A stretch of DNA of 43,921 nt, from the NCBI GenBank assembly GCA_001179505.1, contig CDMY01000605.1, positions 1-43,921 on the forward strand. The letters run 5' to 3'. How positions within the stretch are numbered: position 1 is the stretch's first letter; the number at the start of each line of letters is the position of its first letter. Source of the stretch: Vitrella brassicaformis CCMP3155. Lineage: Eukaryota > Protista > Chromerida. The translations under genes and the position numbers were made by a program. Below, in pieces: positions 36,211 through 39,241 of this stretch. Under the pieces are notes generated by a model, which saw only the letters and a list, made by a program, of their open reading frames with translations, had not been told where the DNA came from and did no database searches.

Positions 36211-39200
36211 TCACTTAGTGTCGTCATCGTCGTCGTCATCGCTCCCCAGTTCTGCTCATTCACAAGGAGACACAGCAAATATTTATATTTCCTACCCTCT
36301 CCCTCACCTCCCGCAGATATGGACACGATGCGCTCCCGTCCCTGCCCGTCGGTGAAGCGAATGAGGAAGCCCCCACCGCTGGCTGGGGCAGCTGAAGGCG
36401 AGGCTGAATTCGGTGTCGTTTTCGGTGTCGGTTTCCCCGGAAGTGTAATGGTGTCTGACTCATAAAACCAATTCGAGCGATCCATCGCTAATACACACAG
36501 CTGAGACATGGGTATTGTTACAGCCTTACTCGACTCGTTGCCGCCCGTCGGCCGGGGATTTGGCGTCACAGGTCTGGGTGGTGCCGTCAGCGCATCCAGC
36601 ACCTACAAGAGACAGAGATGACAGATACACCTACAAGAGACAAGAGAATAGTACCTCTTTCGCCGTCGGTCGTTTGCTTCGATCTTTCTCAAAGCACCGC
36701 TGCAAGCCGCCACACACGCTCTCTTTCCCAGAATAAGCTGTTGCTCTCTTTGTCAGACGCACCTGAAGGACCTGCCGCACGTGCGGAGGGAACAGCTTGC
36801 CCGTGGGCACCTCAGGCTGCCAATGGAATGGAATGGAATGAGACACGAATAAAGTGACTAATGTGCGGCTAGAAAAAGAGCCACAAAAGACCTTCACTCC
36901 CTGCTCGAGCAGTCTCTTGGCTTGCTCCGCAGCTTGCTGTGAATTCAATCCACTCAGCTCAGCAGCGAATGGCCTCTTTCCTGCAGAGAGAGCAAGGCAA
37001 TGGGAGGAGGTCAGTAGGTAGGCTGCATCTCACCGCCAAGAATCTCCACCTCAACACACCCCAGAGCCCAAATGTCGGTAGCAAAATTCGGTCGGACGTC
37101 TGCAACATACAATGACAGCTACAGAGAGAGACGATAGCAACAGTGGAAACTCACTTGGGTCGTAGGTCTCGAGCGGCATGTAGCCGGGTGAGCCCGCACC
37201 TACGTGTGATGGGTGAGTGTCTGTATAAGTATGTCTATTCATGTGGAAAAGCCCTCACCTAAGGTGCTTGCTATACTGGTGCCCTGCACGAATCTCGCGA
37301 GCCCGAAGTCGGTGATCTTGATGTTTCCTTTGGCGTCGACCTGAGTGAGGAGACAGCACAATTGGATGAGAGCTATTCACATTGTCAGGCCTGTGGCGTG
37401 GCTGACGAGTATGTTGGCTGCTTTGAGGTCGCGATGGACGATTTGGTGTGCGTGGAGGGCAACAACACCCTCGCAAACCTACACACACAAAGGCACTTTG
37501 CCTAGCAAGCCTCAGACACAGCGATATACCTGCACGGCCAGTTTCTGGCGGATGCTGTCGTCTAAACGCCCGTCTTTAGCCAGCCGTTCCAGATATTCGT
37601 CCACTTGGCCACCGATGCAGTACTCTGAGAGACAGAAGGCTCACCAAATCGGGTAAGACACAGGTGCTCGTAATGTACCTATGACAATAATCGCCTTCGT
37701 CCCACTCCCGGGCACAATCCCGAAGAATGTGATCAAGCGAGGATGCCGAACGCGCGAAAGGACGTGTATCTCCTTCTTTGCGTCCTCGATCGATGCCTTG
37801 TCCTGAGCAGGCGACACATTGTGCCCATGTCAGGCTTCGCTCGATCGGCGTGACGGTCCCCGATAATCGCTCACTAGTCTCTTAGCGGCTACAGCTCGGC
37901 CCTTCCACTTGGCCTTGAGCACAGTACCGATTGCCCCCGAGCCTGTTCAGCCAGAGACATAAAGGAAGCCATCTGTCCAAGTACGCCATCGACTGCTGCA
38001 TCCCATACCGAGGACATTGTCGAACCCAGCCTCGAATTCCAGCTCATGAGGCTTGATCACATCGAAAATGGGGGGAGCCGTCAAATCAACATCCTGTTCA
38101 CTCGTGTCATGGCTGGGCTCGGGCAGAAGGCGCTGATCCGCTGCCGGCCGTGGCTGCTGTGCACCGGTCGCCTGCATCCTCAACTTGATCTCGCCTGCCA
38201 CGATGGAAAACGCCTGACAGCACACACCAAGACATACACAGTATGGGTGGGGTGGACCGGTGTCAACGTTGTGTGTTCCAGAAACCGTTGTGAGCGTCCT
38301 TACCTGCTCAACGTTGTGTGACTTTTTCGCGGATGTTTCGAGGAATGAAATGCCGAGCTGGTCGGCGAGCTCCTTTCCCTCGTCGTAAGACACCACCTTT
38401 TTGCTCGCCAAATCACACTTGTTGCCGACCTGCACACAGGCGCACACACCCACACACACGTGGAACGGCACACAGAGAGTGTGTGTGTGTGTGGTGTAGG
38501 CATCGTACCAGGAGCTTGTTGACGTTTTCTGTGGCGTATTTGTCGTTTTCTGCGATCCAGTTCTTGACGTTAAGGAAACTCTCCTTGTCCGTCACGTCGT
38601 ACACTATGATGATGCCTACACACACACACACACACACACACACACACAGATGGCCATCATGCTGCACCCTTGCGTCCATATGGTTGAGAGAGCGTCCTCC
38701 CTCCGCTCACCATGAGCGCCTCTGTAGTAGGATGAGGTGATGGTGCGGAAGCGCTCCTGCCCCGCGGTGTCCCATATCTGGAGCTTGACGGTCTTGCCGT
38801 CCAGCTCGATTGTCCTGATCTTGAAATCCACTCCTATGGTCGATATGCAACTGCACACATCACACACAGCAGAAGCTGGATGGGTGGATGGATGGAAGGT
38901 GGGCCATGTGGCGGCACCTGTCGGTGTAGATATCGTCAGCGAATCTCAGAAGGAGACAGGACTTGCCCACGCCGCTGTCTCCGATCAGCAACACCTTGAA
39001 CAGATAGTCACTGCACACACACAACATTCCAGCATAGAGAGAGAGCAATGGACCAGTCAGAGTGCAAGCAGCCGCGCCAAGCACAGCCCGGCACAGCCCA
39101 GCACACACAGCACGACAGCCTCTCTCTCTCTCCCCTCTAAGCAGACACGCAGCGGCCATCTGCCACTGTGTTGCAGGCAGGCTCATCTGCTTCTCTGTCC

Positions 39201-39241
39201 CTCTCCCGCGTGTGTGCATGTGCCTACTATTCAGGATTCAT
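36211..39241 (-). CDS. Rab1-like GTPase fused to a TKL-type protein kinase (kinase cassette A)
   Basis: Exons 39228-39241, 38918-39010, 38711-38850, 38509-38615, 38304-38429 and 38009-38213 give [22 protein letters not shown]...IGVDF...[22 protein letters not shown]...NKCD...ETSAK...[10 protein letters not shown], then a linker and [20 protein letters not shown]|[22 protein letters not shown] (37302-37310), [14 protein letters not shown] and [11 protein letters not shown]. The C-terminus is either ...[11 protein letters not shown] (36211) or a hydrophobic tail to 36117. Confidence 0.9.

Follow-up and report, generated by a model that had tools for sequence, protein, structure and literature searches.

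The contig CDMY01000605.1 of Vitrella brassicaformis CCMP3155 (assembly GCA_001179505.1), which was analysed over its entire length of 43,921 nucleotides (nt; hereafter the window), carries on its minus strand a gene, here termed copy A (39241..36211), that joins the G domain of the small GTPase Rab1 to a protein kinase. The gene has 19 exons and encodes a protein of 561 amino acids (aa). All 18 introns in this model are of the GT-AG type, the reading frame is unbroken, and the translation agrees letter for letter with the database protein P0205 (CEM25894.1; UniProt A0A0G4GAB6). Public annotation gives the same gene span with one product, and copy A is already present in the databases as one annotated protein, under the automatic name 'Protein kinase domain-containing protein' only. 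The last three exons of the model were set from the complementary DNA (cDNA) contig L005, which encodes the protein P0086. The parts of the gene are as follows.

36211..39241, minus strand: coding region of copy A; the exon model equals P0205 and the annotated gene span is identical
38304..39241, minus strand: exons 1-5 with their introns, the Rab1 G domain with G1-G5; Pfam Ras match, canonical Rab1 exon lengths
39241-39228, 39010-38918 and 38850-38711, minus strand: exons 1, 2 and 3, from the exon model
38615-38509 and 38429-38304, minus strand: exons 4 and 5, from the exon model
38009..38213, minus strand: exon 6, the junction exon, a single genomic exon with which the cDNA contigs L004 and L005 are 100% identical, both flanks being spliced
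38120..38213, minus strand: the Rab1-derived part of exon 6, from nucleotide alignments to the canonical Rab1 gene
36655..37942, minus strand: exons 7-16, the kinase catalytic domain, from the Pfam Pkinase match and motifs
36211..36602, minus strand: exons 17-19, a Pro-rich C-terminal tail with NTITLPGKP, the acidic end DDDDDDDTK and the stop codon, from L005 / P0086
35975..36210, minus strand: 3' untranslated region (UTR), where L005 nt 1310-1740 align to 36461-35975

The encoded protein is ordered as a Rab1 G domain (aa 1-175), a tail remnant and a new linker (aa 176-215), a kinase domain (about aa 216-480) and a final acidic tail of about 80 aa, most of which is predicted with low confidence. 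Pfam places Ras at aa 10-169 of P0205 (2e-64, 216 bits) and Pkinase at aa 226-478 (8e-52, 176.7 bits against a cutoff of 31.7), and the Pfam Roc model also matches aa 10-124 (116 bits). Pfam finds no COR domain in P0205, in keeping with the original prediction made from the DNA letters, and only about 55 residues separate the Ras and Pkinase matches; no EF-hand is matched by Pfam in this protein either. The G domain reads as a complete G1-G5 set plus Rab-family motifs ([32 protein letters not shown]), with GDSGVGKS (G1) at aa 15-22 (38982-38959), STIGVDF at aa 39-45, G3 at 38771-38757 (derived by hand from the exon map), NKCD (G4) at aa 121-124 (38423-38412) and ETSAK (G5) at aa 149-153 (38339-38325). 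The kinase has VAAK at aa 246-249, the helix-C Glu within aa 260-265, HRDLKAAN at aa 339-346 and DFG at aa 359-361, and all of the Rab1 and kinase motifs that had been claimed for the chain (G1-G5, VAAK, the helix-C Glu, HRDLK..N and DFG) were located in P0205. Together, exons 7-16 hold GSGAIG, VAAK, the helix-C Glu, [11 protein letters not shown], PLE, DIWALG and RP, where PLE is a variant of the kinase APE motif with its Glu kept. The kinase motif set is complete and the domain is predicted to be catalytically competent. Its closest solved relatives include CTR1, PKR, Nek7, TAK1 and B-Raf, a mixed group in which CTR1, TAK1 and B-Raf are of the TKL type and PKR, Nek7, BMX and STE20 kinases also appear.

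The two halves meet within one exon. Exon 6 runs from helix alpha5 ([14 protein letters not shown]), the last helix of the G domain, through the linker to ...FDNVLG at the start of the kinase with no stop codon or splice site in between, exactly as had been proposed for 38009-38213. The final codon of exon 6, interrupted by the intron, is the first of the glycine loop GSGAIG, whose remainder is in exon 7. Rab1/Ypt1 proteins carry C-terminal prenylatable cysteines (CC or CXC) for membrane anchoring. The canonical Rab1 of Vitrella ends in GGCCS and the copy A protein in DDDDDDDTK, and since the last cysteine of the latter is at aa 462, its C-terminal prenylation is impossible.

Transcript evidence was obtained from a cDNA assembly of the Joint Genome Institute (sample 3300017297), in which two intronless contigs carry copy A and canonical Rab1 is likewise present without introns. 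One contig, L005 (1740 nt), covers exons 4-19 unbroken and continues through the 3' UTR to 35975; it is 100% identical to the genome at the Rab-linker-kinase junctions, and its junctions are spliced as in the copy A model except that intron 14 is retained in frame. Since L005 is unbroken over these exons, the Rab and kinase parts (G4, G5, helix alpha5, the linker and the kinase) share one mRNA. A second contig, L004 (protein P0080, 443 aa), has the exon 4-9 junctions at 100% identity and then a 3' half resembling copy C, a paralogous kinase gene in the window described below. The spliced L004 and L005 thus both span the Rab-kinase junction, with no ending or trans-splicing of transcripts between the parts, and the single chain that had been predicted is agreed upon by the genome, the public annotation and a junction-spanning spliced cDNA contig. 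Copy A is a real gene that is at least partly transcribed.

The intron kept in L005 (intron 14; 36817-36891, minus strand, 75 nt, in frame and without a stop codon) would add 25 residues between kinase subdomains X and XI, and its retention could reflect either an alternative isoform or unprocessed RNA. Both contigs differ from the genome only in exons 10-11 (window 37478-37259; L004 nt 713-1459 and L005 nt 716-880). The differences are bases like those of copy C and of copy B, a tandem sister of copy A, and include one base combination that is present in none of the three genomic copies, a mosaic that points to gene conversion between the paralogues, a difference between strains or an additional copy that was not seen. 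Long-range splicing from copy A to copy C was considered for L004 and rejected, as the change from A to C occurs within exon 10 and not at its boundary, and the C-like sequence differs from copy C of the window; an assembler chimera through the shared tract, or a converted allele, fits better.

The source of the Rab module can be traced to the species' own Rab1. A separate canonical Rab1, which was looked for following the original prediction, is present on CDMY01000091.1 (P0001, 202 aa), has its own cDNA contigs and retains the CC terminus. Its exon lengths of 14, 93, 140, 107 and 126 nt are identical to those of exons 1-5 of copy A, all five of its intron positions are kept in copy A with the introns still alignable, and a single alignment of 1228 nt (80% identity) connects the two genes through all introns, beginning 26 nt before the ATG and reaching about 38120 in exon 6. 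The shared exon lengths and the intron-spanning alignment indicate that copy A derives from a DNA-level duplicate of Rab1. The homology stops at about 38120-38110, about 12 codons before the canonical CC terminus and stop codon, and nucleotide alignment of the window revealed no remnant of the canonical CC end or 3' UTR. Only these last 12 or so codons, including CC, have been replaced, and about two thirds of the hypervariable tail (aa 175-193) can still be aligned. Hence the earlier statement that both the hypervariable tail and the prenylation cysteines are absent was right about the cysteines but not about the tail, most of which is kept. As read from these alignments, the last exon of the Rab1 duplicate is shown to have become continuous, in the same reading frame, with the lead-in of a local family of kinases.

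Codon and DNA comparisons of the module with P0001 were made over 168 comparable codons, positions 38733-38774 being left out, and gave 94% protein identity, 92.7% identity of the coding sequence and 11 residue differences. The best matches of the module are the Rab1 proteins of Vitrella (P0001) and Chromera (P0002), and by sequence and ancestry it is a Rab1, though one that lacks the prenylation motif. The pairwise ratio of nonsynonymous to synonymous divergence (dN/dS) between the module and canonical Rab1 is about 0.15, with a range of 0.13-0.19. By the Nei-Gojobori method, 13.7 nonsynonymous and 23.3 synonymous differences were counted (3.0 and 8.0 in exons 1-3 alone), and P = 0.011 was obtained with every nonsynonymous change and half of the synonymous changes given to the fusion lineage. 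The nonsynonymous deficit means that the Rab module has been kept as coding sequence, and this codon comparison shows the pattern of purifying selection acting on it since the fusion.

The kinase half belongs to a set of related genes, two of which lie in the same window.

39919..43693, minus strand: copy B, tandem sister of copy A, with a degenerate Rab module, a kinase and a GLF/FG-rich tail
25801..29183, minus strand: copy C, a Kelch-kinase (P0087, 679 aa) whose Kelch propeller precedes the same kinase cassette

Copy B adjoins copy A directly upstream on the same strand and has the same Rab-to-kinase join, with one exon going from ...DGKELA directly into the kinase lead-in ([17 protein letters not shown]). 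Its exon at 41807-41720, the homologue of exon 14 of copy A, is 1 nt shorter, such that use of the homologous splice sites leads to a premature stop, and one intron has a GC donor (at 42508). The public annotation nevertheless gives a 649-aa product with Ras and Pkinase domains (43448-39919) that starts downstream of the P-loop exon, and copy B is possibly a pseudogene or a pseudo-GTPase. Copies A and B share derived bases in exon 2 and are almost identical in exons 11-14, yet A is nearer to canonical Rab1 (synonymous divergence, dS, of 0.17-0.20) than to B (dS 0.37-0.38), and these patterns of divergence suggest gene conversion or unequal rates. On another contig, P0088 has the same kinase cassette before ankyrin repeats. 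Both P0087 and P0088 share with copy A the kinase (56-62% identity or more), the lead-in I..ELEF.AG..LG and the motif NTITLP.KP, with the variable module being a protein-interaction domain (Kelch or ankyrin) in these paralogues and Rab1 in copy A. This looks like a module-swapping kinase family, in which a conserved cassette would be combined with a Kelch, ankyrin or Rab1 module.

The distribution of the fusion was assessed by word-indexed homology searches with P0080 and with full-length P0205, taking the best 120 matches of each query and their precomputed Pfam domains. Among these matches the combination of Ras and kinase is genuine only in Vitrella sequences, and no Chromera protein has both domains. 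Three fish models with Ras and kinase domains (P0245, P0252 and P0286) were rejected as merges of neighbouring Rab1 and Eph-receptor genes, judging from the ephrin-receptor ectodomain families that they also contain. A search of the ESM Atlas gave clusters with a kinase only or a Rab only, and no fusion. When the 41-aa kinase exon was searched against protein representatives, P0080 was recovered together with low-complexity or weak matches, one of which (P0081) is a repeat artefact. In the homology and Atlas searches, which fell short of a complete survey of domain architectures, no genuine second organism with a Rab-kinase fusion came up. The literature yielded no account of such a fusion either, and the original prediction knew of none. 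Copy A is a real architecture that is undescribed and, in these searches, species-restricted.

To our knowledge, chimeras of a GTPase and a kinase are known almost only as ROCO proteins. In this family, a COR domain of about 250-300 aa comes directly after the Roc G domain and is responsible for coupling Roc to the kinase and for dimerisation, and in the LRRK/Roco kinase subset a TKL kinase lies C-terminal to the GTPase. Copy A has in common with ROCO proteins (LRRK2, LRRK1, DAPK1 and Dictyostelium Roco4/GbpC) a G domain of the Ras superfamily N-terminal to a kinase, which in copy A may be TKL-like, as well as the concept of a kinase that is regulated by GTP and tied to Rab biology. It differs from them in having no COR and no leucine-rich, ankyrin or WD40 repeats, and its G domain is not Roc but a true Rab1 (216 bits for Ras vs 116 for Roc, with 94% identity to Rab1 and five shared introns). 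Moreover, ROCO is an ancient family whereas the copy A fusion is a lineage-specific duplicate. Judged by its domains, and with no COR and a true Rab1 G domain, copy A is not a ROCO protein. Large or multidomain Rabs (CRACR2A/Rab46, Rab44, Rab45 and DNAJC27/RBJ) resemble copy A in that a Rab-type G domain is part of a larger protein. Large Rabs have N-terminal EF-hands and a coiled coil, followed by a C-terminal Rab domain with a prenylation site, while in copy A the Rab is N-terminal and cannot be prenylated and its partner is a kinase. The same kind of domain comparison excludes copy A from the large Rabs of the Rab44/45/CRACR2A type. Among protists, fusions of small GTPase domains with other domains are frequent within individual lineages, one example being a Rab-BTB-Arf protein (Vargova et al., 2021; PMC8358228), but this survey of multidomain proteins concerned the ARF family and reported no kinase fusion, in contrast to the Rab1-kinase combination of copy A.

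For the role of the fused module, the explanation considered best, to which about an even chance is given, is that the unprenylated Rab1 part of copy A is a domain for docking and regulation that depends on the bound nucleotide. Rab1 exchange factor and GTPase-activating protein would load and unload the fused module, the GTP form of which would bind Rab1 effectors at membranes of the endoplasmic reticulum (ER) and Golgi. Such binding would place the kinase at ER-Golgi membranes and might switch it on, and the Rab module of copy A would in this way do the job that Kelch or ankyrin modules do in the paralogues. From these considerations we infer a GTP-dependent targeting or regulatory role for the module. 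The GTP-switchable kinase of the original prediction, which would couple ER-Golgi regulators of Rab1 to phosphorylation, is plausible.

Several observations weigh against a nucleotide-dependent Rab1 module in copy A. The cDNA contigs provide no RNA for exons 1-3, which encode the P-loop and switches I and II, and in an RNA-like run (X1) only one of seven sampled exon 2 words was present. In the searches made, the fusion is restricted to one species. The AlphaFold2 model of the protein (built on an alignment of 30 sequences) has a predicted local distance difference test score (pLDDT) of 61 and a predicted template modelling score of 0.45, and is too weak for domain contacts between Rab and kinase to be inferred; the linker of about 40 aa and the tail are of low confidence, with pLDDT below 50 at aa 485-530 and 546-561. 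Two of the 11 residue changes, T32I and F37C, fall within switch I or close to it and might affect the binding of partners. Finally, the Rab module of copy B has DTAGR in place of the motif with the catalytic Gln (Gln to Arg) and NRCD in place of NKCD, and it has lost both G5 and helix alpha5. To judge from copy B, the nucleotide switch is either dispensable or decaying in some members of the family, and this decay of GTPase motifs tempers any claim of an essential switch. As to the missing exons, both cDNA contigs begin at 38605, inside a run of 44 nt that is identical to the canonical Rab1 mRNA. This is where an assembler would be expected to break, as contigs lose rare variants beside an abundant and near-identical transcript, and therefore the lack of exons 1-3 is not evidence of their absence from the mRNA.

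A different, and on balance unlikely, explanation is that the fusion is a by-product without Rab-dependent function, in which transcripts or translation start after exon 3 and leave no working G domain, or the gene is decaying as copy B appears to be, and only the kinase matters. The missing RNA for exons 1-3, the loss of GTPase motifs and the frameshift in copy B, and the occurrence of the fusion in one species would all be in accord with this, as would the volatility of a family whose cDNA differs from the genome in a mosaic of exon 10/11 bases. However, there is constraint not only in exons 4-6 but also in exons 1-3 (3 nonsynonymous vs 8 synonymous differences), neither the reading frame nor any of the 18 splice sites is disrupted, none of the nucleotide-binding motifs has been lost, and exons 4-5, with G4 and G5, are certainly present in mRNA in frame with the kinase.

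A nucleotide-dependent role of another kind, allosteric and not targeting, would be a ROCO-like switch, whereby the nucleotide state of the Rab gates the kinase in cis or within a dimer without COR. The order of GTPase then kinase is that of LRRK/Roco, the Roc model of Pfam matches the G domain (aa 10-124, 116 bits), the kinase resembles CTR1, TAK1 and B-Raf of the TKL type, and the Rab motifs are intact and constrained. This mechanism is nonetheless rather improbable, since the domain that performs Roc-kinase coupling and dimerisation in ROCO proteins is missing, the Rab and kinase domains are separated by a low-confidence linker of about 40 aa, and the same kinase occurs in paralogues with Kelch, ankyrin or a degenerate Rab. 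In addition, for a lineage-specific duplicate with a dS of about 0.25 the time for an allosteric interface to evolve was limited.

The module might instead be a substrate. In a 'Rosetta-stone' fusion of enzyme and substrate, the kinase would phosphorylate the switch-II Thr of its own Rab module and of free Rab1, and the fusion would record a kinase-Rab1 pair. TAK1 targets Rab1A-T75 and LRRK2 phosphorylates the equivalent switch-II Thr of Rab8/10/12/35/43 (PMC5695910). In these pairs a TKL-type kinase is functionally coupled to a Rab, which for TAK1 is Rab1 itself, and switch II of the copy A module is that of canonical Rab1, including the Thr equivalent to Rab8A-T72; TAK1 is also among the closer solved relatives of the kinase. 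On the other hand, the known pairs are separate polypeptides, the argument is by pure analogy, and the similarity to TAK1 (E about 1e-24) is generic, being no better than that to many other kinases, while the Kelch and ankyrin paralogues suggest that the variable module is a targeting domain and not a substrate. A substrate role is thus considered doubtful. Just as doubtful is a combination of both ideas, a minimal GTPase-kinase unit without COR, in which a GTP-binding Rab1 switch would be read in cis by the TKL-like kinase and the latter would phosphorylate the switch-II Thr of its own and of free Rab1. If true, this unit would by itself form a counterpart of the LRRK2-Rab and TAK1-Rab1 axes, and it would suggest that Rab1 is controlled by a kinase in the algae related to apicomplexan parasites.

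A mis-assembly or mis-annotation that joined a Rab1 paralogue to a neighbouring kinase gene, as in the fish Rab1 and Eph-receptor merges (P0245, P0252 and P0286) and for which the N gap 3' of the stop codon of copy A might be cited, is effectively refuted, since the join lies within a single exon, is spanned at 100% identity by independent cDNA contigs and recurs in copy B, and several DNA runs from separate studies and under two organism labels contain about 0.9 of the words of the locus.

As a natural Rab1-kinase with only a short flexible linker, copy A would offer a simple test case for the ability of a classical Rab switch to direct or control a kinase in the absence of COR. Chromerids are photosynthetic relatives of apicomplexan parasites, and in the 'Rosetta-stone' sense the fusion would also hint at a regulatory link between a kinase and Rab1 in this group. 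The locus in addition illustrates clearly how a new architecture arises: a housekeeping gene was duplicated, and the duplicate, whose origin can still be traced, was linked exon-to-exon to a kinase cassette that has Kelch or ankyrin partners elsewhere. The sister copy B is already degenerating. For now the significance is limited by a fusion found in one species, RNA evidence from exon 4 onward and a function that is inferred.

Other features of the window concern the surroundings of copy A. A run of N (assembly gap) is present at about 35260-35570, approximately 650 bases 3' of the stop codon of copy A and approximately 400 bases past the 3' end of the cDNA contig L005, and leaves the coding region untouched. 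Between copies A and C (29567-34168), the plus strand carries a calpain-like peptidase gene (472 aa) and an ankyrin-repeat gene (568 aa), and past copy C a further protein kinase gene (787 aa) lies on the plus strand at 21821-24763.

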